The notes beneath the pieces are model-generated. The model had not been told where the DNA came from, ran no database searches, and saw only the letters and a list, made by a program, of their open reading frames with translations. Source: Macrostomum lignano (taxonomy: Eukaryota). From it: a DNA stretch of 64,000 nucleotides. Shown here one piece after another: positions 10,692 through 51,600 of the stretch (position 1 is the stretch's first letter; every line of letters starts with the position of its first letter). Location: NCBI GenBank assembly GCA_002269645.1, contig NIVC01001000.1:248001-312000 (forward strand), in the 5' to 3' direction. The position numbers and the translations under genes are program-made.

Positions 10692-10729
<38 letters not shown>

Positions 10730-16299: not shown

Positions 16300-19200
16300 T
16301 TAGCACATATGAAAGCAGCGGCTGCTCATTGTGTCCGGACCTGGGCAGGGCAAGCCACCATTCGTTGGTTCCGGATTGTTGCACTGCCGGGTTCTGGAGT
16401 GGACACCGGGGATGTTGCAGTCAACCGTTGGACTGCATTCGCCGTAGGCTCCCCACGGCCCCCAGCCGCCGTCGACGCGGGAGACGCGGAAACTTTGACG
16501 CAGCGGCTTTGAAATTTTGAGCAGGCCGCCAGCTGTGCTGCGAGTTGAGATTGAGACTTCCACGACGCTGTTTTTGGTTTGATTCCTCAGCCAGAACTCG
16601 TAGGTTTCGCCAAGTACGTCCTGCTGATTGTCCGGTACCACGGAAACATCCGTGTCGTCCATCAGATCCGTGCCGGACACTGTCCAGGTGAGAAAGAACG
16701 AAGATGCGGCCAGGCCGAAAGGAGCTCGACGCCATTTAATCAGCAGATCGGTGCTGTCCAGAAAGCCAACAATGGTGAAGTTCATTGGCGGTTGAACCAC
16801 ACCTTGAAGGGATTTATGGTTTGATTGTCTGTATGATTAAGCTCGAATTCAAAGGTGCAGATTAGTTTTAGCAGATAAACATTTAACTAAAAAGCGTCCA
16901 AGTTCTTTGTTTTAGTAGTTTTTTTTCCCGTTACGGATGTGCAATCGACAGCTCATCCGCAGCTGTTGCTGAAGGCTGCGTACGGCTGTTCAGTCCAAGG
17001 ACTGCGAGGTCACAACACACACACCCTCAATTACCCAGCTAATGCTGGAACCCATTTCTTCAGCAGGGTGAACTGAAGCAATGAAGGGTTAAGTTTTGCT
17101 CGAGGGACGACGCAAGTTCCTTTCAGTCGTGAATCCGACGACGCTCTAACCACTAGGCTAAAACCCATCGCCTTCAGTAGACTTCGAACTCAAAGACTAG
17201 ACTTACTGTTATCGCAGGCGTCCAAATTCCAGCATTGTTTCTTAATCGAAGCCAGCCCAGTTTCGCAGGGCGAGCCGCCGAACTCCGGCTTGGGATTGTC
17301 GCATTTTCTGCAGTGCCTTCGATGGCCAGACGAGCAACGATTCGGAGGTTCCGTTGTGCACTGCGGTCCGCCCAGTTCCAGCGGGCAGGGGGCCCAGGGC
17401 CCCCACTCACCGTGGACTGGGCATTCGCCACCGAGGCATTTTTCGAAACCGGCCGACGGCCCACGGCAGTCGGAGCCGCCGCCGCTCGGTGGCGGGTTGT
17501 TGCACAGTCGATTGCGCACTCGATAGCCGTAGCCGCAGGTTACTAAGCAATTCGACCAAGGATTCCAAGGGCTCCAGACGCCGTTCACTTTCGGACAGTC
17601 GGCGATGGTGCACTCGTTGCGCTGCGTCTGCGTGGAGACGGCCGGTTCGATGCAACTGCCGGGCGGTAAGTTCGATTCGCACTGACGGCTGCGTGTTCGA
17701 GTCCGGCTGCCCGAGCCGCAGGTGGCGGAGCAGGCACTCCACTCGGACCAGGCTTGCCAATCTGAAAAGAAAATGTTGCCGTTACTGGCCTGTGCTCTGC
17801 ATCAAGGACGGTTATTGTTGATTTTTATGAGTGCTTGATGGGACACTGTTGAGGCCATTGTTCTGTCATTGTTGTGACAGTGTTGGGACACTGTTGGGGC
17901 ATTGTTCTGTCATTGTTGTGACAGTGTTGGGACACTGTTGAGGGCATTGTTCTGTCATTGTTGTGACAGTGTTGGGACACTGTTGGGGCATTGTTCTGTC
18001 ATTGTTGCGACAGTGTTGGGACACTGTTGAGGGCATTGTTCTGTCATTGTTGTGACAGTGTTGGGACACTGTTGGGGCATTGTTCTGTCATTGTTGTGAC
18101 AGTGTTGGGACACTGTTGAGGGCATTGTTCTGTCATTGTTGTGACAGTGTTGGGACACTGTTGGGGAAAATATTTCTGTTACTGTTCGACGAAGTAACTA
18201 AATATTCGGAAAGTTAGAGTAAAGTAGCTTCATGAAAGCAGTCCATAAATGCAAGCACAGGCGCAATACTTCCCAGAGAGTATTGAAATCCTAATGGCTT
18301 CCATTTTAGTCCAGTAATTTCACAAGCGCCTTTCCATATACCAGGTTTCTAGCTCAAACCATATCTAACGCATGTTCTGCTGCTTTCAAAGATGCAGACG
18401 CTGTGTAAGCAATCATATTTTAGTAACCATGGTGTGACTAAAATGTGCAGTGTGAATAGCACCTAGGAATGAAAAATTTAAGCTACAGTTTTCAATGTTT
18501 GTTCCATTAGCCCCCCTGCATGCAGACTGACGGATGACAATGTAAATTCAGCTTTAAATAGCTATTATTTTTACCGAATTTTTGCTTGCTTCGATTGCAG
18601 ATGCATTAGCCAGAACATAATATTTCAGTTTTTATACTAAAACCCACCAGACCAGTTTACATGTATCTGCGACAGGTGGCTTCATCAGTCGAAAGCTTTG
18701 GCGGTGAGGAAATTGGCAATCAAAAGCAAAAAATGGGAAATTTATTATGTTGCAAAATGCATATTTGCTACGAAGCACGACGTCTTTCCGGCGATACTGA
18801 AGTCAAGCAAGCATAGAACTCCTCATCCATGGTCAAAATTTGCATTTCTGGGTGCTGCTTTTTAACGACTTGAGTTGTTATATTTTCCCAAGAATCTAAT
18901 AAAATTGTTTTAACAGACTTTACGGTCGCTTTGCAATCGAAGATAGTTTATTCTCTAGTTAAGTAGCTACTTGCTTAGTCAGTTCAAGGTCAGTCGAATG
19001 GGGAGAAGCACTCGCACAGGGCATTCGTTCGGAAAGACAGCGTCTCTGGTGCGTCTACCAGACCTGTTTTTCTTGAGTAGCGAAGAATGTAGTTCTCGAT
19101 ATTTCCACCGTCATTTGGTTCACTTGAATCCCACAGGCTGGGATCGAACTCCAGCCCGCAGTCCAGCCACCGCCACCCTCCGCTTGGCTCGGGACTTCCC

Positions 19201-22200
19201 TCTTCCTGGTGGCCGCCGAGCCAGATGTTCAGGCCGCTGAACTGGGAGCTGATGAAGCGCAGCTCCTCAGCGTCCAGCACGTCGGCCATGATGACGAGGC
19301 CGGTCTGGTAGGCGCAGACCTGCCGGCCCCTCTGCCAGCCAGCCGTGCCGTTCACCAGCCGGTAGCGAATTCCGCACCGCTGGGAGTCGAACTCAGGCGG
19401 GCAGAGTTTTCCAGGCGGCAGGCCCGGCCGCTGCTTCACGAAGACCCGACCGGAGGCCGAGCAGCTGGCGCTGCAGTCCCGCACGCCTTTGCTGCACCTG
19501 TCGAACACGAACAGCTGGCAGGGGCCGCGGGCTAAGCTGAAGGCCTGGCAGCGGGGCCTGCTGGGGCAGAGCAGCGAGCACAGGCCCTCCGATGCTGCCG
19601 CGCTGCTGCCCAGGGGCGTCTCCGTGAACTCGCTGCGGATGCACAGGCTGGCGTTCACGGCTGTGAATGACTGCTGCGATGAGCACTGGCTGCTGCCAGC
19701 CGTCACCGAGATGAGTAGGCACTGCAGCTTCAGCAATACTTCTAGGCCGAAGCGTAGCTTCATTGCAAACCTATTTGGCCTACGGTGACGAGACTTGTTA
19801 TTGAGATGTCTAGCTTTTTATCGGGACGCCAAATCGCTCATTATTGGTCCATAAAGTTTGTCCAATTGGATGGGCAATTGCTTGTTGCAGATTACTTTCG
19901 TTAGACAATAAGCATAAAGAATTCCAAATAAAATCAGATGGACATATTTTCGCTGTACATGTCGTAAAAAAGTTGGCACAAACAGTCAGTTGCCCATGGT
20001 TGGTCTTGCACGATTCTGCAACTCACGTGACCCTCGTACTAGAATGACCTCATACATGTAGTTACTTTTTAGGCGTCGTACTGTATTCATTCAAGTCGTA
20101 GTTAGAAACGTTGCATTAGTCGACCTCGAGTCGACATTGAGTTGCGAGAGATACATGAAAGACTTTTTAAACAAAATTTAATCTGGTAAAAAACATATTT
20201 TTGGTTTGGTTATATTTGGGGCTTTAGCACCAAGGGGCTTTAGCACCAAGGGGCTTTAGCACCAAGGGGCTTTAGCACCAAGGGGCTTTAGCACCAAGGG
20301 GCTTTAGCACCAAGGGGCTTTAGCACCAAGGGGCTTTAGCACCAAGGGGCTTTAGCACCAAGGGGCTTTAGCACCAAGGGGCTTTAGCACCAAGGGGCTT
20401 TAGCACCAAGGGGCTTTAGCACCAAGGGGCTTTAGCACCAAGGGGCTTTAGCACCAAGGGGCTTTAGCACCAAGGGGCTTTAGCACCAAGGGGCTTTAGC
20501 ACCAAGGGGCTTTAGCACCAAGGGGCTTTAGCACCAAGGGGCTTTAGCACCAAGGGGCTTTAGCACCAAGGGGCTTTAGCACCAAGGGGCTTTAGCACTG
20601 TTATGTTATGATTATGTTTATGATTTTGTTATGATTATGTTATGTTATGTTATGATAGACTCATAGACTCATTCTCTGTGTGTTTGATTTATGTCTATGG
20701 ACACGACTAATAAACGAGTGTTAAAGAGCACTTATAACTACACAGCTGCTCTATATCCTTACAAGCATCTGGAAACATAAGACTTCTGTGTCGCAACACA
20801 ACATGGTGTCAGAGGTGCACTTGTGAAGAGCTGTGGATTTGAATTGTCAAACGCAGTACTGTGCTCAACTGGATCTGGATTCAAATGGATGGCGGGCTCA
20901 AACCCCCAAAGCCATTCTGCTTTGATGAGCACAAGGCGGAAAACTGGAGTAAATGGATTTCTGCGTTCGAGCTCTATATGACTGCAACCAAGCGTGACGA
21001 ATCACTGGCTAAAGTGCAAATAGCGACACTGCTAACAGCCATCGGAGAAGAAGGTCGTGAGATTTATTCAACTTTCGAGAAATCGGAAGGAGACGAAGAG
21101 CTGTCGAAAGTGACGAAACTGTTCGAAGAATATTGCAAGCCGAGTGCGAACGAAACTTTCGAGCGCTACAAATTTCGGCAACGCAGGCAGAACGAGCATG
21201 AGAGCATTGACTCATTCGTCAGCGGCCTGAAACAACTTATCAAGACATGCTCATTCGAGAAGCCAGCCTACGAATTGACGGTGAACGAATCAATAATCAG
21301 AGATCAGATTGTCCTCGGAATCAGAGACACAGAGTTGCGAGAACGGCTTCTACGTGAGCAGGAGTTGACGCTAAATAAGGCTATATCTATCTGCCGTGCA
21401 AGTGAATCATCTAAGACCCAAGTGCGGATCATGACGGGAAACACCTCCGGAGAGATTTCGAAATACATCCAGAGAGAAGTCAATTCTGTTGTGAAGCCTC
21501 GCTCAACAGGCAGACCAGATCTCAAGTACAAGGAGAGACGACCGAACAAAAGGTTTGGGTCCAATGGAAAGCCGATGGTAGGAAAGTCGGAGGGTTGCTC
21601 ATTCTGTGGTAAGAAACACAAGAAAGGTTCATGCCCTGCATATGGCAAGACGTGCAAATCTTGCGGAAAGCAAAACCACTTCAGCAACGTTTGTCGGAAT
21701 AAGACCGTAAGAGCCTTGGATCGAAATACAAATGAAAGCTCAGAATCTGATCGTCAAGATTCGTGGGTCATGTCAGCATCTCTGCGACCGGGTGGCAACG
21801 ACAGAGACAGTAGAACAACTGTTGGTATCAAAATCGAAGGTCAGTTGGTGAATTGCAAATGCGACACAGGAGCGGACGCAAATGTACTCCCTGAACATCT
21901 GCTTAGGCGGATTGCACCAAACACGTCGATGCAAGCAACGTCTTGCAGACTCTTTTGCTATAAAAGGTCGCGCCTAACAGTCGCAGGGAAGGTACAATTG
22001 AAACTGGAATATGAAGGAGTCAAGCATGAAAATGAATTTATTGTGATTAAAGAGAGGCTCATTCCACTCATCGGATGGAAAACTGCAGAAAAGATAGGCC
22101 TGGTGAAATTCAACTTCGGAGTTTCTGTTCAACCTGAAGGGTTTAAGTCCACGTGGACAGATGAAAGATTTCTTCGAGAATATCCCGATGTCTTTGAAGG

Positions 22201-25200
22201 AACAGGTTGCTTACCTGGGAGTTATCACATCAGCCTGCGCGATGACAAAGAATCTTGGACGGATCGCCCTCGAAGAATCCCGTTTGCAGCAATGCAACCT
22301 TTGAAGGCTGAATTAGATCGCCTGGTTTCGGATGGACTCATCACCAAGTGTGATGAGCCCACGAAGTACGTTTCAAATGTGGTCGTCGTCTGGAAGGCAG
22401 ACAAGACTATACGTCTTTGCCTAGACCCTCAGCATCTGAATGCCAACATAATGAGAGAGCAGTATCAGATACCGTCTTATGACGAAATTATTGCAGAAAT
22501 CGGAAACGCTGCTCTGTTCTCAACTTTTGATGCGACTGCGAGTTTTCACCAGATTGCATTGGATTATGAAAGTTCGTTGATGACGTGCTTTCACACACCT
22601 TTTGGACGATATCGTTGGCTGAGAATGCCCTATGGAATTTGTTCCGCATCGGAAGTCTACCAGAAGCGAGTTCGGGAGGAGATCTCGGAAAAGATCAGAA
22701 ACTGCAACAATTTTATTGACGACTTCATTGTTTGGGGCAAGACTGTTGAAGAACACGATGAAGCTGTGAAGCAGCTTATGGAAATGTGCCGTGCGAAGAA
22801 TTTGCGCCTGAATTATAAAAAGCGGAAAGTCGGATTGAAGGAATTGAAATTCCTCGGCAACATACTTTCGCACACCGGAATTAAAGTCGACCCAGACAAA
22901 GTAAAAGCAATGCGCGATATGCCCCGACCAGATACTCTATCCGGCAATGAGAGAAAGCAGCAACTTATGCGATTTCTAGGATGTGCAAATTTTTTGTCCA
23001 AATTCATTTTGGATCTGTCATCTAAGGCAGCACCGCTACGCACATTGCTGACGAAGAATGCTCAGTGGAACTGGACAAATGAACACGAAAAAGCGTACGA
23101 ATCAATTTTGCAGAGTCTTTGCGACGCACCAGTCTTAGCTCGCTATAACCCGAATGCACCACTTACTCTGTCAGTCGATGCTAGTCAACACGGTCTCGGA
23201 GCAACTATCCTGCAAGATGGACACCCGCTGGAATACGCTTCGTCATCACTGACGCCATCCCAACGGAAGTATGCTCAGATCAAAAAGGAACTTTTGGCTA
23301 TTGTGTTTGGCTGCAAGCGATTCCACCAGTACGTCTGGGGACACAAGGTAACGGTCGAGAGCGACCACAAGCCGCTAGAGAACATCTTCCGGAAGCCAAT
23401 TTCAACTCTTACAGCAAGATTGCAGAGACTGATGCTACTAGTTCAGAAGTACGACCTGCACATTATATACGTTCCCGGTAAAGACTTGCACATTCCAGAC
23501 ACTCTAAGCCGCGCTTTCTTAAAGAACGTACATGCCTCTAAACAACTCGAAGATGACATCGAAGGTCACGTGCTCGGTGTTAGAATGTCGGTTGGATTCC
23601 CAGAACTGATGCAGAAACTGGAAAATGAAACGGCAAAGGACTCAACACTGCAACAACTCGCTGAGATCATCGGTGTTGGTTGGCGTCACCACAGAAGCCA
23701 GCTCGTGACTGAGCTTCGTTGTTTCTGGAACGTCAGACATGATCTGACTGCGCATGGCAATCTGATCTGGATGAAGAACCGAATAGTCGTTCCAAACTCA
23801 ATGAGAATGGAAGTGCTACAGAAGCTGCATACTGGACACCCTGGAATTGTGAAGGCAAGCTTAAAGGCGTCAGAGAGCGTCTACTGGCCTGGAATTAGAT
23901 GTGATATTCAAGAAATGACTTCAGCGTGCATTGCCTGCCAGGAAAGCCAAAGAAAGCCACAGAAGGAACCGATGGTGGCTCAGTGCCTACCGGACTACCC
24001 ATTTCAGGAATGTGGCACGGATATTTTCCATATTGACGGGAAGAATTTCCTGATATATGTTGATAAATACAGTCGGATGATCGAATACGCTAGGATCAAC
24101 AATACTTCAGCTGCCTCTGTGATTCCCCAACTAAAGAAGTATTTCCAGACCTATGGAGTTTGCGAGATTTTAAGATCTGACAATGGACCTCCATTCTCGG
24201 GAAGAGAATTTGGTCGTTTCGCAAAAGAGTACGGCTTCAAGCATGCTACATCATCGCCGAAGTACAGCCAGTCCAACGGATTAGCGGAAAGAGGCGTTCA
24301 AACGATCAAGAATATTTTAAAGAAGGTTCTGAAGAGCAATGAAGGCGAGCACATGGCACTGCTGCATTACAAGAACACTCCTATCGAGCATGGAATGCCA
24401 TCACCCGCTGAGCTAGTCTTTGGACACAAACTGTGCTATGATTTGCCGATCCCAAAAGCAGATCTAATTCCTAGACAGGTCATGTCCAGGAAAGTACTGC
24501 AGAAGCTAAAGGACCAGCAGAACAAGGCCGAAGAATATTAAAACCGTGGATCTAAGGAGAGGAGAGAATTTGGTTGTGGAGAAAAGGTTTGGATGCAAGA
24601 ATCAACACGACGATGGCAGCCAGCAGAAGTGCACATGAGAGTGAATGACCGTTCTTATATAGTTCGCGATGAACAAGGAAAGCTACTACGTCGGAACAAA
24701 TCGTTTTTGACTCAACGGACTGGAGCAGCAGAAGAAATCGCTGTTCCACAAAGAGAAACCCTTGAAGACGCATTCGGAAAGGAAACTACCGCACCACTGA
24801 AAGCTTCTCAAAGTCAACCGGATAAGCACGAAGCAGTGGAGGAAAATATAGGCAGCAAACCATCAGCACAAGCACCTAATGCACAACAATGTCAGTCACC
24901 TAGGACGACAAATGGCTATACAACACGGAGTGGACGTGTGGTGAAGCCAGTCGTGCGATTTCAGGCACATTGACTAATGAAAAGGTGTCAGTGTAGAACA
25001 GAACTTCCGGAAAGAGGATTTATTTTACTTACACATAGGAATCCCTCTGAAGAAGGGAGATGTTATGTTATGATAGACTCATAGACTCATTCTCTGTGTG
25101 TTTGATTTATGTCTATGGACACGACTAATAAACGAGTGTTAAAGAGCACTTATAACTACACAGCGCCCCCTCTGCCAGCACCAAGGGGCGCCAGCACCAA

Positions 25201-28200
25201 GGGGCGCCAGCACCAAGGGGCGCCAGCACCAAGGGGCGCCAGCACCAAGGGGCGCCAGCACCAAGGGGCGCCAGCACCAAGGGGCGCCAGCACCAAGGGG
25301 CGCCAGCACCAAGGGGCGCCAGCACCAAGGGGCGCCAGCACCAAGGGGCGCCAGCACCAAGAGGCCAAGGGGCGCCAGCACCAAGGGGCTAGTTAACCCA
25401 AAACCACACTGCAGACTAGCCCGACAAACTTATCTATAATTTTCAAACGTCATTTAGCAAGAAATAATTGTAAATGCATAAAGAAACTCACCTGGCAAAC
25501 TGGGACAGGGCACAGCTTCGTTGCAGCTTTGGCTCTGTTGGCCAGTTTCATTTGAGCTGCAGTTCTTCATCGTATCTGGCGCCGGCTTCAACTTCGACGT
25601 GAGGCACTCGCGACTGCGTGTCTGCAGACCACCGGAGCCGCAGGTCTTTGTGCAATCGCTCCAGCTGGACCAACGAGTCCATTGCACCACAGCTGAGCAA
25701 AGAAATATAAATAGCAAATATAATACAAAGCTACAATTTACATATGCGACTAAACTTTGAGTAGATCTTATTTCAAACACTGCTGGTACTTCCTACTCAG
25801 CGCTAAATTCGTTGGATTATTTAAAAAATTATACTTAAACTCGTTTAAGGATTCTAAAAAGCCATATTCTCACTTGATGGGTGATTTCGAATATACCACA
25901 GTTTGACTTGAATCACTTCAAATAAACTATAATTTGACTTGTTGGGTGATTTTTTTAAGAAAAAATTATTTGACTTGAGCGATTTTTAATAAACTATAAA
26001 TTGAACTGTTGGGTCATTTCTAAGAAACTATCATTTGACTGGAGTTATTTCTAAGAAACTAATTTTTTACTTGAGTGATTTCTAAGAAACTATTATTTAA
26101 CTTGAGTGATTTCTAAGAAACTATTATTTGACTTGAGTGATTTCAAGGAAACAATAAATTGAATTCTTTGGGTCCTTTTTAATAAACTATAATCTGCATT
26201 GTCGGGTCGTCTCTAAGCAAATATAATTTGAATTATTGGTCATTTCTAAGAAACCACATTTTCAACTATTAGTGCTTTCTAGGAAATCCAACTTAAATAC
26301 GTTTGGGGTGTACGGGAATTCCAGAAGTCCACGGGACTTGTCGAGCAACATTTTTATGAAACTGTTTTATGCAGTGAGAGAACATATTTCTTATGCTCTA
26401 CTCATAAGCAGTACAAACAGGGCATTTCGTTACTTTTTCAGTTTTTACTCACGTGGACACTCAATCTGATTGCACGCCCGAGTTTCCAACCATTCGCCCG
26501 GGCACAGCAATGTTTTTTGGCCGGCCGGACGCATGTCCGAGTCGCGCAGGCACTCCCGGTTGCGATTGGCAACGCCCTGATTACCGCAGGTGGCCGAGCA
26601 CTCTGACCAGGCCTTCCAGGCCGACCAATGGTAGGTCTCTGTTGGCGTTAATAGTGAATACCCAAGTCGGAGTAATAAACTATTAAACTAGTTAATAATA
26701 ACACAATTTTCTTTATTCACTTCTCAATAACAAGGGGTCGTAGCCTAGTGGTCAGAGCGTCCGACTCACGACTTGAAGGTCGGGGGTTCGATTCCCAATC
26801 CCACTAAAACAATTTGTATCCTTGAGCAAGACACTTAACTCTGCATTGCTTCAGCTTAAAAGCTGTAAAATGGGTGCCAGCATTAGCTGGGGTAATTGAG
26901 GCTGTGTGGCGACCCCCCCAGTCCTTGGACTGAACAGCCGTACGCAGCCTACAGATGCGCCGTGCAATAGCTGCGGCTGAGCTGTCGGTTGCACATCTGG
27001 CCCAATTGGGTCAGGGTTAGGGTGGCCGCAGCTCTGCTACAATTTCTTCTGGTCTGCATCTCCCCAATGAGTTGTTCAACCCGATCAGCGCATACCTTCG
27101 CAAGGTGTGCCGCAGGAGCGACTTTCCACCTCCTTCTCCGACGGATTCAGTACGCTTGATCTGAACCTGAAAGTGCATCAGAAATTTAATGAGATTAACA
27201 CGTAGACGCTTGAGTAACTTTGCAGTAAACTACTTTACATACCAAAGCTACTGCAAGGGGCGCTAAAGCTACTGCAAGGGGGGGGGGCACCAAAGCTACT
27301 GCAAGGGGCGCCAAAGCTACTGCAAGGGGCGCTAAAGCTACTGCAAGGGGGGAGGCACCGAAGCTACTGCAAGGGGCGCCAAAGCTACTGCAAGGGGCGC
27401 CAAAGCTACTGCAAGGGGCGCCAAAGCTACTGCAAGGGGCGCTAAAGCTACTGCAAGGGGGGGGCACCAAAGCTACTGCAAGGGGCGCCAAAGCTACTGC
27501 AAGGGGCGCTAAAGCTACTGCAAGGGGGGAGGCACCGAAGCTACTGCAAGGGGCGCCAAAGCTACTGCAAGGGGCGCCAAAGCTACTGCAAGGGGCGCCA
27601 AAGCTACTGCAAGGGGCGCCAAAGCTACTGCAAGGGGCGCCAAAGCTACTGCAAGGGGGCGCCAAAGCTACCGCAAGGGAGCGCCAAAGCTACTGCAAGG
27701 GGCGCCAAAGCTACTGCAAGGGGCGCCAAAGCTACTGCAAGGGGCGCCAAAGCTGCTGCAAGGGGCGCCAAAGCTACTGCAAGGGGTGCCAGAGCTACTG
27801 CAAGGGGTGCCAGAGCTACTGCAAGGGGTGCCAGAGCTACTGCAAGGGGCGCCAAAGCTATTGCAAGGGGGCGCCAAAGCTACTGCAAGGGGCGCTAAAG
27901 CTACTGCAAGGGGGCGCCAAAGCTACTGCAAGGGAGCGCCAAAGCTACTGCAAGGGGCGCCAAAGCTACTGCAAGGGATGCGCCAAAGCTACTGCAAGGG
28001 GGACCCAAAGCTACTGCAAGAGGGCGCCAAAGCTACTGCACCGGCGCCAAAGCTACTGCAAGGGGGCGCCAAATCTACTGAAAGGGGGCGCCAAATCTAC
28101 TGCAAGGGGGGCGCCAAAGCTACTGAAAGGGGGGCGCCAAAGCTACTGCAAGGGATGCGCCAAAGCTACTGCAAGGGGGACCCAAAGCTACTGCAAGAGG

Positions 28201-28773
28201 GCGCCAAAGCTACTGCACCGGCGCCAAAGCTACTGCAAGGGGGCGCCAAATCTACTGAAAGGGGGCGCCAAATCTACTGCAAGGGGGGCGCCAAAGCTAC
28301 TGAAAGGGGGGCGCCAAAGCTACTCCAAGGGATGCGCCAAAGCTACTGCAAGGGAGCGCCAAAGCTACTGCAAGGGGGGGGGGGCGCCAAAGCTACTGCA
28401 AGGGGGGCGCCAAAGCTACTGAAAGGGGGCGCCAAAGCTACTGCAAGGGGGGCGCCAAAGCTACTGCAAGGGGCGCCAAATCTACTTAAAGGGGGCGCCA
28501 AAGCTACTGCAAGTGATGCAAGGGATGCGCCAAAACTACTTCAAAGAGGGCAATTAAAATTGAAAGGAACCGGAGCGAGTAAAGGAGCACTCACCGAGTC
28601 TGCTTGCCATCGCCGCAGGGCAGACTGCACTTACTCCAGCCGGACCAGTCTGTCTTAGGATTCTCATCGACTCGAGCTGTCTTTCGTTGACCACCGAAAC
28701 AGGCGCTACCGATTCGGCACAGCGAAATTGTCAGCACCAAGACCGACACTGCCGCTGCAAGGTGACGATTCAT
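16300..28773 (-). CDS. TSP1 gene E: predicted secreted protein with signal peptide, 7 TSP1 repeats and 1 FN3 domain (~564 aa, 6 exons)
   Basis: Exons 28773-28595, 27166-27096, 26638-26453, 25692-25492, 17761-17207 and 16802-16300 all have GT-AG boundaries, phases 2,1,1,1,1, and join into one open frame of 1695 nt. WxxWxxWxxCSxTCG..RxRxC motifs occur throughout, and an FN3-like segment (PPMNFTI..LIKW..TYEFWL..VSIST) precedes the last TSP1. Joining exons 4 and 5 across the 7.7-kb intron is inferred from phase compatibility. Confidence 0.75.
16936..17167 (-). mobile_element. SINE family 2 copy in the last intron of gene E
   Basis: Reverse complement of the 5155 element: ...CAGTCCAAGGACTG...CTCTAACCACTAGGCTA. 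Confidence 0.8.
17842..18165. repeat. 45-bp minisatellite (GGGACACTGTTGRGGGCATTGTTCTGTCATTGTTGTGACAGTGTT)n
   Basis: About 7 tandem units. Confidence 0.95.
18990..19763 (-). CDS. Intronless secreted PAN/apple + C-type lectin domain protein (257 aa), nested in intron 4 of gene E
   Basis: Signal-peptide-like N-terminus, PAN-type C..LCSLLC..RPRCQAFS....CQL, and CTLD motifs W..GRQVC, IWLGG, WRWLD, WDSSEPN and terminal LCE. Confidence 0.85.
   Translation of the reverse strand: MKLRFGLEVLLKLQCLLISVTAGSSQCSSQQSFTAVNASLCIRSEFTETPLGSSAAASEGLCSLLCPSRPRCQAFSLARGPCQLFVFDRCSKGVRDCSASCSASGRVFVKQRPGLPPGKLCPPEFDSQRCGIRYRLVNGTAGWQRGRQVCAYQTGLVIMADVLDAEELRFISSQFSGLNIWLGGHQEEGSPEPSGGWRWLDCGLEFDPSLWDSSEPNDGGNIENYILRYSRKTGLVDAPETLSFRTNALCECFSPFD
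20218..20598. repeat. 16-bp minisatellite (GGGGCTTTAGCACCAA)n, ~24 perfect copies, abutting the 5' LTR
   Basis: Read directly. Confidence 0.97.
20599..25164 (+). mobile_element. Ty3/Gypsy LTR retrotransposon (Mag-like single gag-pol ORF) with very short LTRs and a truncated 3' LTR
   Basis: The 5' LTR runs from ~20643 (TG start, preceded by a TTATG expansion from 20599) to 20803 (CA). The PBS TGGTGTCAGAGG is at 20804 and the PPT GAAGAAGGGAGA at 25049-25060. The 3' LTR at 25061-25164 is identical to the first ~100 bp of the 5' LTR. Confidence 0.95.
20885..24973 (+). CDS. Gypsy gag-pol polyprotein with one premature stop at 24539-24541
   Basis: Tandem Cys/His knuckles (CSFCGKKH..SC, CKSCGKQNHFSNVC), protease CDTGADANV, RT (RMPYGI, FIDD), RNase H (VDAS, ELLA, DHKPL) and integrase (H..GH, CIAC, D..SDNG..E) in PR-RT-RH-IN order. 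The same frame continues after TAA as NRGSKERREFGCGEKVWMQ...RSYIV...RRN to the stop at 24973. Confidence 0.93.
25172..25390. repeat. 16-bp minisatellite (GGGGCGCCAGCACCAA)n abutting the truncated 3' LTR
   Basis: About 13 copies, a variant of the array on the other side of the retroelement. Confidence 0.95.
25900..26290. repeat. Degenerate ~28-bp tandem repeat (TTGACTTGAGTGATTTCTAAGAAACTATTAT-like)
   Basis: Recurrent TTTCTAAGAAACTA and TTGACTTGAG motifs. Confidence 0.75.
26733..27012 (+). mobile_element. SINE family 2 copy in intron 2 of gene E
   Basis: GGGGTCGTAGCCTAGTGG..GGTTCGATTCC..CCTTGAGCAAGACACTTAAC..CTGTAAAATGGG. Confidence 0.85.
27240..28525. repeat. 21-22-bp minisatellite (GGGGCGCCAAAGCTACTGCAA)n in intron 1 of gene E
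   Basis: Dozens of units, and the source of the 290-aa periodic ORF. Confidence 0.95.
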
Positions 28774-29277: not shown

Positions 29278-29598
29278 CTGCTGCTTAGTAGGTAGCCGAG
29301 TGTGTACAATCTGCTAAGCGGCCCAGGCTCATTTTCAAGTGCAGTCAAATTAATTTCGGGGCTAAATTGGTATCTCGGCTTGGCTCGGCTCGCGTAATTA
29401 ACGGCCTTGATGGCCAACCCCCAAGGCACAGTGAAGTGTACATGCCTAACGATAAAATAAAGTTAGGACTGCTGTACACTCCTGTGTGAGTGTATGCCTG
29501 CTCAGGGGAGTCGGCATAATGTCAGCAATGCCTCTCGCCGGTTGTGTGTGACAATGTCGCTTAAAGTGCGCCAGGGTGCACGCAACCCCTGCCTCTAA
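29278..29598 (+). mobile_element. SINE family 1 copy
   Basis: Shares the body GCGGCCCAGGCTC..AATTAACGGCCTTG..TTAAAGTGCGCCAGGG. Confidence 0.8.
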
Positions 29599-29606
29599 TA
29601 AAAAAT

Positions 29607-29882
29607 TTACCCAGCAACATGGAAAAGTCGCCATCACAGAAGATTCCGTCTGTGGACGCCAATTTTGAGAGCGCAGGTGAAGTCTCTCAATCTTTGCGAG
29701 TGACGCAACTTAACTACGCCTGGGCAGACTTGAGTTGAGGAATGAAGTGAAGGGAGCGGTGTGAGGGTTGGACGGATTAAAGCTACCCCGATCAGTTTTC
29801 TCGCGTCTTTTATTTCAGAATAGTCCAAGAGAAATTGCTCACTGGCGCATAGAGTGGCGGCTTTTCAGTGTTGCTGAGTATG
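29607..29882. mobile_element. ~275-bp MITE sharing both ends with the MULE remnant at 39619-40670
   Basis: CAGCAACATGGAAAAGTCGCCATCACAGAAGATTCCGTCTGTGG matches the reverse complement of 40623-40667. AGAAATTGCTCACTGGCGCATAGAGT..TGTTGCTGAGTAT matches the reverse complement of 39618-39668. Confidence 0.75.
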
Positions 29883-33375: not shown

Positions 33376-33669
33376 CGAACTGTGACTTATTTAATATGAT
33401 ATAGTAATAAGATTGCCCAGGCTACACGTAAAAATCGAAGTTATAAAATACGAGCCTCTACAATGCCTATAAACCGGCATAATTGCTTTCAAGTATCAAT
33501 AAATGCATTGTATGACCTCTAAATCGGGTCCCTAATCTAAAAAAGCTTTCTGTTTTAACTGAGACTACTTTTATCATTCTCTAGTAAACTAAGCGCATAG
33601 ATATGAATGCCAACAATATTAAAATATAGCGCAAAAATATACTAAAACTATTTTGACAAAGTGCACAAT

Positions 33670-34450
33670 TCATCTTAGATATAGCGCCAAGAACATCTCA
33701 GATATAGCGCCACAATCATGTTAGATATAGCGCCAAGAAAATTTCAGATGTAGCGCTACATTCATCTTAGATATAGTGCCACAATCATCTTAGATATAGC
33801 GCCAAGAAAATCTCAGATATAGCGCCACAGTCATCTTAGATATAGCGCCACAATCATCTTAGATATAGCGCCACAATCTTCTTAGATATAGCGCCACAAT
33901 CATCTTAGATACAGCGCCACAATCATCTTAGATACAGCGCCACAATCATCTTAGATATAGCGCCACAATCATCTTAGATATAGCGCCACAATCATCTTAA
34001 ATATAGCGCCACAATCATCTTAGATATAGCGCCACAATCCTCTTAGATATAGCGCCACAATCTTCTTAGATATAGCGCCACAATCATCTTAGATATAGCG
34101 CCACAATCCTCTTAGATATAGCGCCACAATCATCTTAGATATAGCGCCACAATCATCTTAGATATAGCGCCACAATCATCTTAGATATAGCGCCACAATC
34201 ATCTTAGATATAGCGCCACAATCATCTTAGATATAGCGCCACAATCATCTTAGATATAGCGCCACAATCATCTTAGATATAGCGCCACAATCATCTTAGA
34301 TATAGCGCCACAATCATCTTAGATATAGCGCCACAATCCTCTTAGATATAGCGCCACAATCATCTTAGATATAGCCCCAAGATCATCTTAGATAAAGCGT
34401 CACACTAATCTTAGATATAGCGCCACAATGATCTTAGATACGGCGCCAGA
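33670..34450. repeat. 23-bp minisatellite (AGATATAGCGCCACAATCATCTT)n between genes A and B
   Basis: More than 30 units. Confidence 0.95.
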
Positions 34451-34607
34451 ATCAAATTGCTATGCATTGTAACGTTAAGCAATTGTCTTTCGAATTTGTC
34501 TATGTCAAAAACTCAGAAAGTGACGACTAAAGAAAGTTGAGAAGTTATAAATATTTCAGAAGTTAGATAATACACTAAATTGTAGGACGTCATCAATTCG
34601 GTCTTTA

Positions 34608-37600: not shown

Positions 37601-38161
37601 ACTGTAGCTTATAGGAGTGCTAGACTGTAGCTTATAGGAGTGCCAGACTGTAGCTTATAGGAGTGCCAGACTGTAGCTTATGGGAGTGCTAGACTGTAGC
37701 TTATAGGAGTGCCAGACTGTAGCTTATGTGAGTGCCAGACTGTAGCTTATGGGAGTGCTAGACTGTAGCTTATAGGAGTGCCAGACTGTAGCTTATAGGA
37801 GTGCTAGACTGTAGCTTATAGGAGTGCCAGACTGTAGCTTAAAGGAGTGCCAGACTGTAGCTTATAGGAGTGCCAGACTGTAGCTGATAAGGGCGCCAGA
37901 GCGCAGCTGATAGGACAATCAATGTGATTGCACTATACATGTAGAAGAAAGCCAGGCAACTGAAAAAGATCACTCAAAATGATTAATTTTAATTCACTAA
38001 AATTTGCAGCAACCTGGACCCACTGGAGTCAGTGGGGTCTGTGCAAGCAAATCAAAAGTCCATTGAAATTTCGTTTCCGCGAATGCGTCTATGATAATAT
38101 GAACGTTGCGGACAAGTACTGCGCAGGATTGTACTTCGAATCCGACGTATGCAATTTTTGA
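34608..38161 (+). CDS. TSP1 gene B: predicted type II membrane protein with 3 TSP1 repeats (243 aa, 4 exons)
   Basis: Exons 34608-34885, 35472-35584, 35670-35858 and 38010-38161 are GT-AG with phases 2,1,1 and total 732 nt in one open frame. Hydrophobic segment IGYLICSVSIPLTMLCVA, then NTACIALQRGLFC, FQWTDWSSWTPCSKSCIEG..RTRSC, and ATWTHWSQWGLC..RFRECVY..YCAG..FES.VCNF*. Confidence 0.85.
35100..35355. repeat. 24-bp minisatellite (GGATGATGTTCCTAGATGGTGCCT)n in intron 1 of gene B
   Basis: About 9 units. Confidence 0.9.
36095..37900. repeat. 23-bp minisatellite (GTAGCTTATAGGAGTGCYAGACT)n, ~1.8 kb, in intron 3 of gene B
   Basis: About 75-80 units with progressively degenerate edges. Confidence 0.97.
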
Positions 38162-38339
38162 ACGACAGCGCACAGCTAGCGTACCAGTGTATGACTTCAA
38201 ACTGAACTTTAATATACTGCAAAATAAGATCTTATTTATTTTAAAGCTGTGCCGGTAAAATGATAAAAATTGCTACATTAACAACAGACCGTTTTCCTGC
38301 ACTTTCTCAATTCTTTAATGTGATTTGGTAATATTGAAG

Positions 38340-38985
38340 CAAGTGGTACCTAATTGAAGTCAGTGGTATCTAATTGAAGCCAATGGTACCTAACTGAAGT
38401 CACTGGTAACTAATTGAAGTCACTGGTATCTAATTGAAGTCAGTGGTACCTAATTGAAGTCAGTGGTACCTAATTGAAGTCAGTGGTACCTAATTGAAGT
38501 CAGTGGTACCTAATTGTAGTCAGTGGTACCTAATTCAAGTCAGTGGTACCTAATTCAAGTCAGTGGTACCTAATTCAAGTCAGTGGTACCTAATTGAAGT
38601 CAATGGTACCTAATTGAAGCCAGTGGTACCTAATTGAAGTCAGTGGTACCCAATTCAAGACAGTTAATGCCGAACTGAAGTCAGTGGTACCTAATTCAAG
38701 ACAGTTAATGCCTAACTGAAGTCAGTGGTACCTAATTCAAGACAGTTAATGCCTAACTGAAGTCAGTGGTACCTAATTCAAGACAGTTAATGCCGAACTG
38801 AAGTCAGTGGTACCTAATTCAAGACAGTTAATGCCGAACTGAAGTCAGTGGTACCTAATTCAAGACAGTTAATGCCTAACTGAAGTCAGTGGTACCTAAT
38901 TCAAGACAGTTAATGCCTAACTGAAGTCAGTGGTACCTAATTCAAGACAGTTAATGCCGAACTGAAGTCAGTCGTACCAAATTCG
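38340..38985. repeat. 20-bp minisatellite (GTGGTACCTAATTGAAGTCA)n converting into a 41-bp dimeric unit
   Basis: 20-bp units to ~38650, then (GTGGTACCTAATTCAAGACAGTTAATGCCKAACTGAAGTCA)n. Confidence 0.93.
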
Positions 38986-39188: not shown

Positions 39189-45704
<6,516 letters not shown>

Positions 45705-45862
45705 TTTTCATAACTGGTTATTATTTGTACGTACAAATAAATGTAAAAGTTAAATATGACTGCAGAGGCTACTTCAATCTTTTTGCTTTCTGGATCTTTT
45801 AATCAACATTATTCACTGTTTTTAACAATACTTCCACTGCTTTTATCGCACGTACCCCTCAA

Positions 45863-46177: not shown

Positions 46178-46751
46178 GCCCAAGGCCAGATGAGCGCAAC
46201 ATGACAAAAAGTATTATTAAAGCCTCGGTCGTAAAAAACGAAAAAAATGAGAGAGTTTCTACACAAATTTGCTCTTGTTTTGTAGGTAAAAGCCTTTATC
46301 TGGCGTAAAAGTAAAACTTGCATGTACTTCATAAGGAGGAAGTTGAGTAGTACTGCATGACTACTTATTAGATTCTTGTCTGAATATTGAGTCAACTCTA
46401 TTTCTTGTCAATAATCTATTTACAAGTAAGTTTCTCAGGTAAATTTTATATAGAGAACTTATTTCAATTATTGTATTACGAGATATATAGAAAGCAAAAG
46501 TCATAATTAAGCTTCTAAAACATTTGTACCGGTTAGAACAAAGCCAGTCAGCCGTCAGCAGTTGGACCACTCCTCAGACTCTTCTAAGGCATTTGCGAGT
46601 TTGAGTTCTGTGCCCAGCTGGAGTCCCGGCTGCCCAGCGGCAGTTGCACGCTATGGTAGATCTGAAAATAACGGCTTGAAATTTTGTTTGCTGATTCAAC
46701 TTAAACGAGTTAAAATCCGACAGAATTTTTCTTAGTTCTGGGGTCATTCAT

Positions 46752-47087
46752 GGGGACTGTAGCCTAGTACACTAGCGCGGTTCTCTGATGTGCCAGCGGC
46801 CCAGGCTCGATTCCCAGTGCATGCAGTCACATTAATTTGAATCTAAATTGGAATCTCGGCTTGGCTCTGCTCGTGCAATTAACGGCCTTGAAGCCCAACC
46901 TCCGCCGCAAGGCACAGTGATGTATATGCCTAACGATAAATAAAGTTGGGGCCGCTGTACACTCCTGTGTGAGTGTGTGCCTGCGTACGTATCCGCGCGC
47001 TTGTGTGCCTACTCAGGGGAGTCGGCGGAATGGGCAGCAATGTCACTCGCCGATTGTGTGACAATGTCACTTAAAGTGCGCCGGGGA
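46752..47087 (+). mobile_element. SINE family 1 copy
   Basis: GGGGACTGTAGCCTAGT..GGCTCGATTCC..TTAAAGTGCGCC. Confidence 0.85.
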
Positions 47088-47168
47088 AAATAAATCTGTG
47101 CACAAGAAATCAAAGGTCAGCCTCTATAAATAACGCCAAGAAACAAAACGAACAAACCGCAAACTTAC

Positions 47169-50100
47169 AGGACGCGCAGTTTCGACTACTCAAACAACTG
47201 CGCTCCTCGTAGCTGTGCCCGCCGCATTTGGCAGTGTCGGCAAAGCTGACTTCTGTCTGTAGGCCACCGCACTGACGACTGCGCTTTTGAACTCCCTCAG
47301 GTGGAGAACAGGTGGCGGAGCAAGCCGACCAGGCTGACCATTGCAGCCAGGCCACAGACTGCGATTTGGTTAGGTCTCGGATGGCTCTGAGCATTGTCAG
47401 CGCTGGCGCAGCTATTAGGGAGATATAGGAGAATGTTGCAATTAATATAGCTCCGCAACAACTCGCCTCCAAGAAGGTAGACTGCTAAAAGCATTTCTAG
47501 AAACTGGCGACACGGATACAAATGATACAACAGCGCTACTGATAAACCCAACTTGTCTATAAATAGTAATATCGGTGACAATCCATCCATCCAGTTATTC
47601 TAAATATGAATCGATTCAATGAGTGACTGAGTATAATGGATGCATTGACGGTTGCGAACTCTCGCGTCAAAACAGGCTGCCTAAGTTTACCATTGCGACC
47701 AATAGCGGTGCCTGCACCTGCTGTTTGGCACAGATAGCTACTGCTCTAATAGCTGTTAACGCCAATTCTTGTGAATCAGGATATTGAAATCCATTCGAAT
47801 GGAAAAAAACGGCGGAGTGCCAGGTGTGACGTTGACGTGTCTTTTTAATTCCACAATCCTTCATTAATTATTCATTAAAAGTTTTTACTACGTATCTCAA
47901 TTATATGAATAGTTTTTCATGTCAGAATTCACCTGACCCAATTAGGCCAGATGTGCAACCGACAGCTCAGCCGCAGCTAATGCTCGGCGCATCTGAAGGC
48001 TGCATACGGCTGTTCAGTCCAAGGACTGGGGGGTCGCCACACACAGCCTCAATTACCCCAGCTAATGCTGGCACCCATTTTACAGCTGGGTGAGCTGAAG
48101 CAATTCACCCAATTCAAACTCTACTATTCAAGAGTTAAGTAGTATTGTTCAAGGACACAAACTGTTTCAGTGAGACCCCTTCTAGTGGAGTCGAACCCCC
48201 GACCCTCAAATCGTGAGTCCGACGCTCTAACCATTAGGCTAAAACCCCTATTACGACGTAACAATACTTAATTGTAGACTGAATTTAAAGTCGCCGTTGG
48301 TCGTAATATTTAAACTGTTAAATTTTGCGCCTTCTCAGAGGAGGGCATTCTTGGGAGCTCGGCTGTTATGAGCTAGATATAATTGTATAACTAACAAGTT
48401 GATAGCTTGCGATAGAATTCTGCCCACCGAAATGCAGTGTCGCGCATTCGATTAATTATTCCTACCCATGCCAGTAGACATTAGACACCTGATTTCGTTA
48501 CCACTCGTGCGTTTTCACCTGCACTAATTGGCGTAGCAGCAAGTCAGCACGCGAACTCTCACCGTCAGATATTCGTCACACGGGAACTCGACAATGAAGT
48601 AATCGTTTTGCACGTGCCAGCTATTAGGAAGCCAAAACTTCGTATATATAGCAAGCAAACAATAGACTTCAGTTCAGTAAAAAAATTAGAAGCCACACAA
48701 TAATATAAGACTCTTACGCGTAGAACAAGCAACACTGCTGGGACCAGCGCAGAATTGTACTTGATCGGAGCCGCCAGCGCAAGATAGTTCAGTGGAACGA
48801 GCTCCTGTTCGAGCATCGATGCATTGGCGCGTACGCGATCGCATACCGGTAATCTGACAGGTGGCAGAACATGGCGACCAAGCCGACCACTGGGACCAAG
48901 AGACGGTAGAGACTGTACCATGCGAACCAGTGCTCATATTTTTCGCAGAGGTCGTGCTGTTCGCGATAGAACCATTGCCGACCGTACTGTTCATAGTTGT
49001 AGATGATGTGTCTTTTGTGTCAGAAGTTGAACCCGTTGAGGCTGAAATGTCAATCAAGGATCAAGGAGATGGCAATCTTTACATGAAATAGGTGACAAAG
49101 AAGGTTGACTTCAGCTCGACCATGGCATCCAGACAAACTTTTGATCCATCAGTGCCCGGCATTTTATTGAAGCAATGGGTGAAGTAAGGCCTTGTAGAAT
49201 ATCAGGTGGGAATCATTTGCGGAAAAGTATTGTAATATACGCCACTGGAGACACTGGAGACAAAGACTACAATTCTAAATGGTATTAAACTCGGTCGAAA
49301 GTTAGGAGCGTATTCCTAGAAATATTCAATCCAGAATTCCAGCGCACCTCGTCAAGGTTTAGATTAGCAAACCATAAATTAGCTTGCGAAAGAATTGACG
49401 AATGAGAAGTGCGAGACCGAAGATGCATTAACGAGATCAGGCACTGCCCAAAGAATGAAAGAACCATGTGGGATAGAGAGTGAAGTTTACTTCCTGTTCA
49501 AGTGTATAGTTGGAACTTTTACAATGGAAATTCCAACAGAGGAATTCATCACAATTCTACAATACTCTTTTCACTCCAATTAATTCGCCATAACTATTAT
49601 CGTAAAATGTAAAAAGCAGCAATCCTATGAGTGCGTATTTCATAATACTTTTTATGATACATTTAGGAATATAGATCAGCTGAAAATAATCACGGTCAAG
49701 TCTAGATGCACTGGAACAGAGCGGCAGTAGCTGACAAGAAATCAGTCTTCAAACCGAGCTGAAATGATCTAATTTTTCACCTACAGCCTAAATTCCTAGA
49801 ATATTTTCCGTTTGTAACACTTTTGTTTCGTGCACATGTACTATTTCAGAGAGCAATTGGACACTGAATCTGAAAATTACGGTATTTAACTCGAGGGAGA
49901 GGCTAACTGAAAACTGTCACTCACCCGATGCGGTGCTGCAACTGGTTCGATTTCCGCAACTCTGAGCTTCGTGGAACAGTCCGTCGCAGTGTTCCGCATC
50001 AATCACCTCCTTCTTCGAGTTCAAGCATTGGCGCTGGCGAACAAACAGACCGAATTCGCCACAAGTCTGCGTGCAGCTCGACCACTCCATCCAGTACGAC

Positions 50101-51600
50101 CAAGACCCAAGCTCTACGGGGTGGAAATAGTAAAGGACAGGGGCACATCCCGCATGGTGATAAATTTCACCACTGCATGCTATGCAAAGTGTGTGCACTC
50201 ACGCGGACAGGCATCGCTAGACTTGCATGGCTGCATCTGCATTGTCGTGACCGGGGAAGCTGTTTCGCTCTTGCCTTTGGCCTCGCTGAACCTGAAATAT
50301 TTAGCATCTACACTGTATTGGTTTTCGCATTCTAACTCAGCCTACGAGCAACCAATCTAATTCAAAGCACAAACACACATGCTCTATGTGATTTTATCTT
50401 GTCTTCCTCCTTGACACTGGTGTAAACAACCAATGCCGACACGGCACACAGTTTAAGCTTGGGTGTGGACAGCTGGCTAGCCTTTGAGCAAGCGTATTAT
50501 AGGAATAGAGTTGAAGACTAGCAGGGTGAACTGTGTTGTTAAATGCTTTTTCACGTACATGGAATCAGTCTTTAGAGATATGTATATAAATAATTTTGCT
50601 TGTCATGTAACTGCAATCTCAGCACTGCATATTAGGGTAACTTGAAGTCCGTGGCATTGAAATAAGCCATTTGGATGAGATAGATTGCTCGTAGGCTGAG
50701 TTAGAATGGGAAAACCAATCGTACGAGTATGTAGCGCTGCATTGACTTATAATCTAATTGAAGGCACTTGAGACTTCTTGAAATTTAGGTAGATAAAATA
50801 ATTTTGATTTTCAGATTTTTCTTCAGCTTTCATCTGAAATAGTTTCCAAAAAGCGTCTATTTAAAAGTATAAATTTTCTAGAAACAAAGAAAGTCAATGA
50901 AAGTACGAAGATATTTCGAAGATAAAAATGTAGGGAATTTAGAATAATTCAGAAATTGCTGGAAATTATGATTATGAAATAATCATAGCCTCTTGCTTGG
51001 TCATTGAGCTCTTGGTCGGGGTGCATCCCAAGGATCCGGACTCTGGAACTAATCTACCGTCAATAGGTCTCCATGTCTCTGATGTCTCAAAATGATGTCT
51101 CTCATGCCTCAAAACCCTTTTGATGAGACGAAATAATGATTCTATCAAAACTGCAACGATTTTATCTGGCTAAAGGCTAAAGAGAAAAACGTTCAAGAAG
51201 TCTGGCACTCGACCTAACGATAAGTATAGGCATACCGGATCTTGTCTCCCGCGCTGCACCTGATGCTGTTGCTGCACTGCGCCCACTGCGTCCATACATA
51301 CTTGACTCTGGCTTTGCTCGCTCGCGCCGGTCTAGACAAATTTCTGGTGCACAAGGGTCCCCTGTCTATGGAAATGCACACGGTGGTCACCGATAGGCCA
51401 CCGATAATCAGGAAGATCAGCAGCATCAGCGGGCACATTATTGCGCAAGGCATCCAGCTGCATTTGTGCGACATCGAGCGCTGCTGTCGGTTGGAATTTC
51501 CGGCTTGCACCTGCGACTGTTGCAGCTGCTGTTGCTGCTGGGGCTGCTGGTTGTGTTGAAAACCGATCGAACCGTGACTGGTTCCCGGCATGGTTTCCAT
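47169..51600 (-). CDS. TSP1 gene D: predicted type II membrane protein with a polyQ tail, at least 4 TSP1 repeats and a Ser/Thr-rich spacer; 3' end unresolved
   Basis: Exons 51600-51236, 50291-50203, 50113-49925, 49041-48718 and 47411-47169 are GT-AG with phases 2,1,1,1,1 in one open frame. Hydrophobic segment AIMCPLMLLIFLIIGGLSV, then TTVCISIDRGPLC. A candidate terminal exon at about 46663 gives only YLP*. Confidence 0.8.
47940..48249 (-). mobile_element. SINE family 2 copy in intron 4 of gene D
   Basis: Reverse complement of the 5155 and 26733 elements. Confidence 0.85.

Follow-up and report, generated by a model that had tools for sequence, protein, structure and literature searches.

Within a 64,000-nucleotide stretch of the genome of the flatworm Macrostomum lignano (the window), we located five related genes coding for thrombospondin type 1 repeats (TSRs, or TSP1 repeats) at positions 16300-51600. 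Rebuilt from the sequence, they lie in the order E(-), A(+), B(+), C(+), D(-). We interpret them, with a probability of roughly 0.7, as a tandem cluster of paralogous, transcribed M. lignano genes whose products consist almost wholly of TSRs, A to D being surface-anchored type II proteins and E a secreted one. The window as a whole is eukaryotic and intron-rich, with many minisatellites.

TSR signature, gene structures and transcript support

Translating the window in six frames yields 21 matches to the motif W-x2-W-x2-5-C, compared to an expectation of 2.8 ± 1.4 (maximum 6) in 50 dinucleotide-preserving shuffles. Twenty of the 21 matches fall within 16435-51294 and form strand-coherent blocks, on the strands given by the initial annotation of this DNA; the odd one out, at 35098, is a minisatellite artefact. 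Scores against Pfam TSP_1 (PF00090) were 43.5 bits for B, 67.6 for C, 61.7 for D and 67.8 for E, all above the gathering cut-off of 21.6. The Pfam check proposed in the initial annotation was thus borne out for these four genes but not for A, which scored 19.7 bits.

Recounting the repeats gave seven in E, two in A, three in B, five in C and four in D, in agreement with the earlier counts (7, 2, 3, 5 and at least 4). The Trp motif W-x-x-W(-x-x-W) is present in all 21. Thirteen repeats have six Cys, seven have four, and one (the sixth of E) has seven in the extracted segment. Internal repeats carry six Cys. The 4-Cys repeats are of two kinds: split first repeats, in which the Cys that follows R-x-R is missing along with its partner, and the terminal repeats of A, B and C, which lack the second and sixth Cys. 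Both repeats of A are degenerate. The O-fucosylation consensus C-x-x-S/T-C-x-x-G is kept in six repeats. Identity between repeats is 15-45%, with no strong block of recent internal duplication, in keeping with the earlier remark that the sequences diverge outside a scaffold of Trp, Cys and Arg residues.

All five genes share one exon-intron plan. Every intron begins with GT and ends with AG. Intron 1 always interrupts one and the same Arg codon (CG|GT, phase 2), so placed that the first two Cys of repeat 1 come before it; the last two are encoded by exon 2, which is 71-95 nt long and has a phase 1 end. The introns after exon 2 are all phase 1, and each phase 1-1 exon holds one TSR, except exon 5 of E with three. 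As a result, repeat number can shift by exon duplication or loss with the frame kept, and the differing counts in A to D (2, 3, 5 and 4) are what such events would give. The shared first-exon architecture noted earlier is therefore seen both in the exon 1 layout and in the phase-2 intron within repeat 1. The canonical junctions and consistent phases also stood, with GenBank's transcript-derived models agreeing for B, C, E and the start of D.

Our model of E equals GenBank BOX15_Mlig004534g2 (564 residues) exon for exon, including the splice over a 7.7-kb intron, with 4 amino acid differences. The model of B equals BOX15_Mlig032991g2 (235 residues), likewise with 4 differences. On contig NIVC01001000.1, the neighbours are annotated as separate genes with products of 235, 413 and 406 residues. 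Splicing this contig at the positions homologous to the six exons of C yields exactly 413 residues, the length of the annotated C product, and the GenBank D product (406 residues) has the same start ATG as our model. The genome paper (PMC5730564) describes the GenBank annotation as a genome-guided transcriptome after filtering, which StringTie and TACO produced from RNA-seq together with a de novo assembly. Given this origin, genes B to E are transcribed, and their transcripts are spliced in the deduced way.

Neither genome copy shows a disrupted reading frame or splice site in gene A; its only UniProt counterpart is the ab initio model P0100, with a different, out-of-frame splice. Two further UniProt models were rejected as prediction artefacts. 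P0002 fuses the last exon of B to C, and P0107 adds a C-terminal extension to D whose last 50 residues are the antisense of C exon 5 (44825-44974, minus strand). The ab initio models of the older annotation are unreliable in this region.

Could the five units be miscut exons of one or two large multi-TSR genes of the SCO-spondin or hemicentin type? The P0002 link from B to C would fit this idea, as would the best non-flatworm matches, which are large 'SCO-spondin-like' and 'coadhesin-like' proteins. However, both strands are used (E minus, A to C plus, D minus), each gene has its own ATG, N-terminal tail and hydrophobic segment, and A, B and E stop inside TSR exons. The transcript-based GenBank models keep B, C, D and E apart. 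We also tried the C-terminal half of E as an orthologue of the oyster and coral 'SCO-spondin-like' proteins and rejected it; the alignment merely threads TSR onto TSR, and the oyster protein shares no other module. We consider the large-gene explanation extremely improbable, and the earlier claim of five separate paralogous genes rather than fragments is upheld.

A protein search with the C model returned two M. lignano UniProt entries at E ≤1e-174, the best other match being a fish properdin at 1e-13. The names on record are only 'hypothetical protein' or 'TSP1 domain-containing protein', and a full-text literature search with the identifiers Mlig004534, Mlig032991, Mlig003893 and Mlig032365 returned no paper that mentions them, consistent with the initial annotation's failure to recognize a described family. 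Genes B to E are thus already in the public annotation, unnamed, and the finding is incremental.

Predicted topology and extent of the family

We analyzed topology by Kyte-Doolittle hydropathy (19-residue mean) and charge only. A to D each show one hydrophobic peak and no other, with means of 2.0-3.0 and peak starts at residues 32-58. The segment is 22-30 residues long and lies about 30-60 residues from the N-terminus. The preceding tails are polar or basic (KRKR...NRK in C, GRKTDK...PK in B, NRQQRSMSHK in D). Immediately behind the segment and ahead of repeat 1, every anchored member carries the motif C-x4-R-G-[LP]-[FL]-C; besides A to D, these members include two further genes, G and H, described below. 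E is different in that it begins with MNRH and a 14-residue hydrophobic core (residues 5-18; peak 3-20), followed by G-S-A|C. It retains the split intron, the Cys and the Arg, but the tail is gone, as is the G-L-F-C portion of the motif.

Signal-peptide cleavage follows the (-3,-1) rule, and by this rule E has a plausible cleavage site after its short core, so that it looks like a secreted protein with a signal peptide. TSRs contain disulfide bonds, and their usual C-mannosylation and O-fucosylation take place in the secretory pathway. Because the repeats need this oxidising pathway, they would face the lumen or the exterior, which makes A to D type II. We infer that A to D are predicted type II signal-anchored proteins and E a predicted secreted protein, the same division by hydropathy that the initial annotation had made.

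An alternative is that all members, A to D included, are secreted proteins of the matrix or of body fluids, the segment being a cleaved signal with a long n-region, or translation starting at a downstream Met, so that the type II appearance is a first-ATG artefact. An in-frame Met lies 6-7 residues before the segment in C and in D (Met43 in both), it would give an ordinary signal sequence if used, and UniProt P0107 starts there. Furthermore, E as the closest relative is clearly signal-peptide-like, and most TSR proteins are secreted. On the other hand, segments of 22-30 residues fit membrane anchors rather than signal-peptide cores of 7-15 residues, and no Met immediately precedes the segment in A, B, G and H. 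In GenBank, the coding sequences of B, D and H, which are transcript-based, begin at the upstream ATG, although these are longest-open-reading-frame calls and not protein data. The N-terminal tails stay open in both genome copies. We regard secretion of A to D as unlikely and favor the type II arrangement.

To delimit the family, we used a HMMER profile of 79 positions, covering anchor, motif and the first half repeat, in an exhaustive search against 1.84 billion representative proteins. Full-length matches were found in M. lignano only, namely C, A, B, D and a 214-residue protein, P0116; all others matched the TSR half only. The N-terminal module thus agrees with the earlier claim of lineage specificity. 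P0116 is gene H; it and its near-twin, P0171 (the entries being BOX15_Mlig003893g1 and Mlig032365g1/g2), are located upstream of D on both contigs. H scores 23.8 bits for TSP_1 and has the same phase-2 intron, split AG|GT. G adjoins H and is annotated with 377 and 486 residues, comprising an anchor, GRGLLC, a split TSR and two further TSRs, and also stretches that resemble PAN and a C-type lectin. Both genes lie just past position 64000, as seen on NIVC01003780.1 and NIVC01001000.1. Between D and these genes, at about 55100-62200, is a rearranged repeat array with strong GC skew.

A to D, and likewise G and H, combine the tail, the segment, the motif, W-x-x-W-x-x-C-S-x2-5-C...R, the phase-2 intron and the Cys of exon 2, and the position of this intron in repeat 1 is kept across seven members (A to E, G and H). 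P0115 and P0129 were considered as additional members and rejected; they have an N-terminal hydrophobic segment and many TSRs but neither the RGLFC motif nor the split repeat. The cluster therefore comprises at least seven genes in the genome. The five of the initial annotation are all in the window, but the cluster is not limited to them. In conclusion, this is a real and undescribed family of predicted type II TSR proteins, restricted to one lineage.

In the proposed arrangement, the long segment of A to D, G and H would serve as an uncleaved signal anchor following a basic or polar tail of 30-60 residues. The tails of A to D would lie in the cytosol and 2-5 TSRs would be displayed outside the cell, with the C-x4-R-G-L-F-C motif at the outer membrane face. 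E would be released with its seven TSRs and a weak fibronectin type III (FN3)-like stretch. Judging from what TSRs are established to do, the products would serve in binding or adhesion outside the cell. The fold would be held by the core of Trp, Arg and Cys, and the diverged surface residues may give each paralogue its own ligand preference. Since the cytoplasmic tails share no motif, tethering or presentation would be likelier than signalling.

Roles in adhesion, gamete recognition, allorecognition or immunity are speculation. A still more ambitious scenario is a Macrostomum-specific, copy-number-variable surface recognition system, directed at partners or gametes in this reciprocally mating hermaphrodite or at microbes or food algae, with repeat number set by phase 1-1 exon shuffling and new architectures, including E, arising by fusion. 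We consider this scenario quite unlikely.

Exon models, genome copies and repeats

Gene E is on the minus strand. Exon 1 (28595-28773) encodes the Met, the 14-residue hydrophobic signal-peptide-like segment and the first half of repeat 1, and ends in the phase-2 donor CG|GT, the same structure as in BOX15_Mlig004534g2. Exon 2 (27096-27166) adds the second half of split repeat 1 (two Cys) with a phase 1 end, exon 3 (26453-26638) is repeat 2 with 6 Cys, and exon 4 (25492-25692) is repeat 3, its donor opening the 7730-nt intron 4. Exon 5 (17207-17761) holds repeats 4-6, the most canonical ones and nearest to properdin and thrombospondin-1 TSRs. Exon 6 (16300-16802) contains the FN3-like stretch (fn3 E=0.048, below cut-off), repeat 7 and the stop codon.

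On the minus strand, one frame within intron 4 of E stays open for 825 nt (275 codons), from 19817 to 18993. Within this region, an open reading frame (ORF) of 257 codons (18990-19763, minus strand) runs from an ATG at 19763 to a stop at 18992-18990 and is PAN-like and C-type-lectin-like. Its homologue in G is the terminal PAN/lectin exon, both ending ...C-E-C-[FL]-S-P-F-[DE]-stop, and a paralogue, UniProt P0040, is named 'C-type lectin domain-containing protein'. Pfam gave a weak PAN_4 match only (E=0.16). A phase-compatible acceptor is present at 19660. The ORF is intact in both copies and 98.2% identical, the same as the surrounding intron, with a pN/pS of about 0.74. Because it evolves like the surrounding intron, it is probably a relic terminal exon, at best a weakly constrained alternative 3' exon. 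The arrangement suggests that E may have arisen from a G-like gene (signal, three TSRs, PAN/lectin) spliced to a downstream gene with three TSRs, an FN3-like stretch and a TSR. We also considered that the seven-repeat E of the initial annotation merges two genes, as the PAN/lectin ORF starts with an ATG, is signal-peptide-like and could be joined by an in-frame splice to the TSR exon that follows it; this was rejected as the main model because the GenBank 564-residue product is the seven-repeat E.

The same intron houses a long terminal repeat (LTR) retrotransposon of Ty3/gypsy type at about 20600-25170 (plus strand), with an intact 1226-residue gag-pol ORF (reverse transcriptase, RNase H and integrase by Pfam). 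Its direct repeats, at 20642-20746 and 25060-25164, are 105 nt long and 100% identical, and the host sequence is a 16-bp minisatellite. The insertion is recent, as the homologous position on NIVC01001000.1 is empty.

Genes A and B follow on the plus strand. In A, exon 1 (30988-31277) encodes a 36-residue N-terminal tail, a 26-residue hydrophobic anchor, a C-IVLQ-RGLFC motif and the first half of repeat 1; exon 2 (31762-31856), with the second half, is 100% identical in the second genome copy, and exon 3 (33215-33375) is the terminal 4-Cys repeat with the stop codon. In B, exon 1 (34608-34885) encodes the tail, anchor, RGLFC motif and first half of repeat 1, in agreement with BOX15_Mlig032991g2. 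It is followed by the second half of split repeat 1 in exon 2 (35496-35584), the 6-Cys repeat 2 in exon 3 (35670-35858) and the terminal 4-Cys repeat 3 with the stop codon in exon 4 (38010-38161).

Gene C, also on the plus strand, has six exons. Exon 1 (39189-39523) encodes a basic 49-residue tail (KRKR), the anchor, an ERGLFC motif and the first half of repeat 1, and exon 2 (40915-40994) the second half. Exon 3 (41141-41347), with repeat 2, is absent from the UniProt ab initio models and required for the GenBank 413-residue product. Repeats 3 and 4 occupy exon 4 (42919-43116) and exon 5 (44824-45018), and exon 6 (45548-45704) is the terminal 4-Cys repeat 5, whose frame would stop at 45702-45704. 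Intron 1 of C is 1.4 kb in the window versus 4.2 kb in the second genome copy. It contains a 192-codon frame on the minus strand (39680-40258) that resembles a transposase fragment by eye, with no Pfam match at E≤0.001.

Gene D is on the minus strand. Exon 1 (51236-51600), with the ATG as in the GenBank D product, encodes a Gln-rich 48-residue tail, a 30-residue anchor, a DRGPLC motif and the first half of repeat 1, the second half being in exon 2 (50203-50291). Exon 3 (49925-50113) is repeat 2, exon 4 (48718-49041) a Ser/Thr/Asn-rich linker with repeat 3, and exon 5 (47169-47411) repeat 4, with a phase 1 donor. The coding part of the terminal exon (..YLP, stop) is tentatively placed at 46651-46661, as this is the sole strong acceptor yielding the 406 residues of the GenBank product.

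We compared the window with two contigs. It is 99.7% identical to NIVC01003780.1 over their overlap, and colinear with NIVC01001000.1 at 87-98% identity. A recent genome duplication is known in M. lignano (PMC10733133). Because both contigs belong to one assembly, of the DV1 line, and given this duplication, the two copies are most likely duplicates rather than alleles. Between the window and NIVC01001000.1, exons are 98-100% identical, whereas introns are 87-97% identical and indel-rich. By Nei-Gojobori counts, pN/pS was 0.29 for A (5 non-synonymous and 5 synonymous substitutions), 0.27 for B (4/4) and 0.24 for E (4/5), values that rest on just 4-5 substitutions per class per gene. These small-count ratios, together with the exon conservation, point to purifying selection and not to accelerated change. 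The description of the family as 'rapidly diversifying' in the initial annotation is thus not supported between these two copies, in which exons exceed introns in identity.

Several observations weigh against our interpretation, in addition to the low substitution counts, the reliance of the topology call on hydropathy and charge, and the in-frame Met of C and D. Gene A scores under the Pfam cut-off and has no entry in the GenBank annotation of Mlig_3_7. In the window, exon 6 of C has a 1-nt deletion near 45556 that puts repeat 5 out of frame, the spliced frame stopping at 45640-45642; the site reads TGGACGAG here and TGGAACGAG or TGGACCGAG in the other copies. An AlphaFold2 prediction of B from the single sequence without alignment had a mean pLDDT (predicted local distance difference test) of 35 and a pTM (predicted template modelling score) of 0.20, and was unusable for fold. 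No expression pattern, localisation, ligand or phenotype was found in the literature or in the supplements of M. lignano papers, which yielded only the unrelated Mlig032365.g3.

The missing annotation of A and the indels of C raise the question of whether the genes, or some of them, are pseudogenes in decay or duplicates without expression, set in a region rich in repeats, in which case the cluster would have no present function. The second contig has another 1-nt loss in exon 6 of C, near the exon end. Moreover, the introns are filled with minisatellites and carry a fresh retrotransposon insertion, and the PAN/lectin frame in intron 4 of E is nearly neutral. However, B, C, D and E have RNA-seq-derived models, and the frames, including that of A, are intact in two copies whose introns are 2-7% apart, with pN/pS at 0.24-0.29. 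Both indels of C lie at 2-nt single-base repeats in long-read-based assemblies, and the third copy (UniProt P0002) is intact; they may therefore be assembly errors, or real polymorphism. We consider decay very unlikely and retain the interpretation of a cluster of transcribed paralogous genes.

Minisatellites with periods of 16-23 nt or a (TGTC)n tract occupy most introns and spacers of the cluster (27242-28513, 32235-33197, 33664-34454, 36087-37915, 38333-38984, 41377-42863 and 43778-44489). They yield long spurious frames, such as CLSVCLSV... and PLAVALAP.... A short dispersed repeat, recognizable as ...HTLTQECTA... in translation, occurs on both strands in introns and spacers (4219-4452, 29446-29637, 46830-47012 and others) and is probably an element resembling a short interspersed element (SINE) or a miniature inverted-repeat transposable element (MITE). 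Outside the cluster, a 495-codon frame at 9584-11068 (plus strand) encodes a proline-rich tract along with a PDZ domain (Pfam E=5e-11); its counterpart in GenBank is a 461-residue gene annotated on the contig, and it has no relation to the TSR genes. At 11683-14631 is a 2.9-kb array of about 272 copies of the 11-nt unit TTCTGTTTCTG, with extreme AT skew.

Comparison with known systems

Few extracellular binding modules are as widely used in animals as TSRs, and lineage-specific TSR expansions are common in invertebrates. To our knowledge, membrane-bound TSR proteins are nearly all type I, or seven-pass in the adhesion G-protein-coupled receptors. Compact proteins of 180-490 residues made of an anchor and a few TSRs would, if the prediction is true, offer a minimal and tractable route to TSR surface ligands. 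RNA interference is established in M. lignano. Transgenesis is also established in this animal (PMC5730564). The cluster further illustrates how diversity in repeat number may come from symmetric-phase exons and tandem duplication, and possibly, in the case of E, from gene fusion.

The closest parallel in layout is the ascidian Tast family of sperm-surface metalloproteases, type II proteins with astacin and TSP1 domains (PMC11673157). Like the type II proteins predicted here, they lack a signal peptide and have one transmembrane segment, at the N-terminus, with TSRs outside the cell (predicted type II), and they are encoded in tandem gene clusters. In contrast, Tast proteins carry an astacin protease domain between anchor and TSRs, whereas the flatworm proteins have no catalytic domain, the kinship in sequence being limited to the TSR. 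No astacin domain (HExxHxxGxxHE) was found in A to E; Pfam at E≤0.1 gave TSP1 families only, except for a chance-level match of A to CfaA_B_C (E=0.026, below cut-off). The gap between anchor and repeat 1 leaves no room for such a domain. Given its absence, the resemblance is one of layout and clustering, not of membership. Tast proteins are the sole described type II TSR proteins found in our literature search, and this topology is thus rare but not unprecedented.

Among solved structures, repeats 4-6 of E best match properdin and thrombospondin-1 TSRs (PDB 1w0r, 9u62, 7yyk and 1lsl; E about 4e-34). The Trp ladder, RxR motif and six Cys are common to both. Properdin differs in being a soluble oligomer with an N-terminal TB domain; by Pfam, this domain (PF18487) is absent from A to E and present in the fish properdin matches. 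In addition, the first and last flatworm repeats are 4-Cys variants, each without one of the three disulfides.

The type I TSR receptors, including UNC5, semaphorin-5, THSD7A and apicomplexan TRAP/MIC2, likewise display TSRs at the cell surface, and chains of UNC5, semaphorin-5A and MIC2 are among the structure matches of E. Their topology is the reverse of that predicted here, with a signal peptide, a C-terminal transmembrane segment and a structured cytoplasmic domain, and they bear Ig, Sema or vWA ectodomains as well. By Pfam and hydropathy, A to E showed no such ectodomain or any other domain, and their only hydrophobic segment is N-terminal.

The best non-flatworm matches of E, 'SCO-spondin-like', 'coadhesin-like' and 'ADAMTS adt-1-like' proteins of oyster, corals and sponges, are about 30% identical over chained TSRs. 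In contrast to the cluster products, they are large (800-2400 residues) secreted proteins with neither an anchor nor an RGLFC motif, and their first repeat is not split. Finally, Mlig-ap2 is a giant secreted glue protein of the adhesive glands of M. lignano with vWD, TIL and LDL domains and 46 long repeats (PMC6410801). It comes from the same species and has multiple TSRs, but its architecture and size are unrelated to those of the proteins described here.

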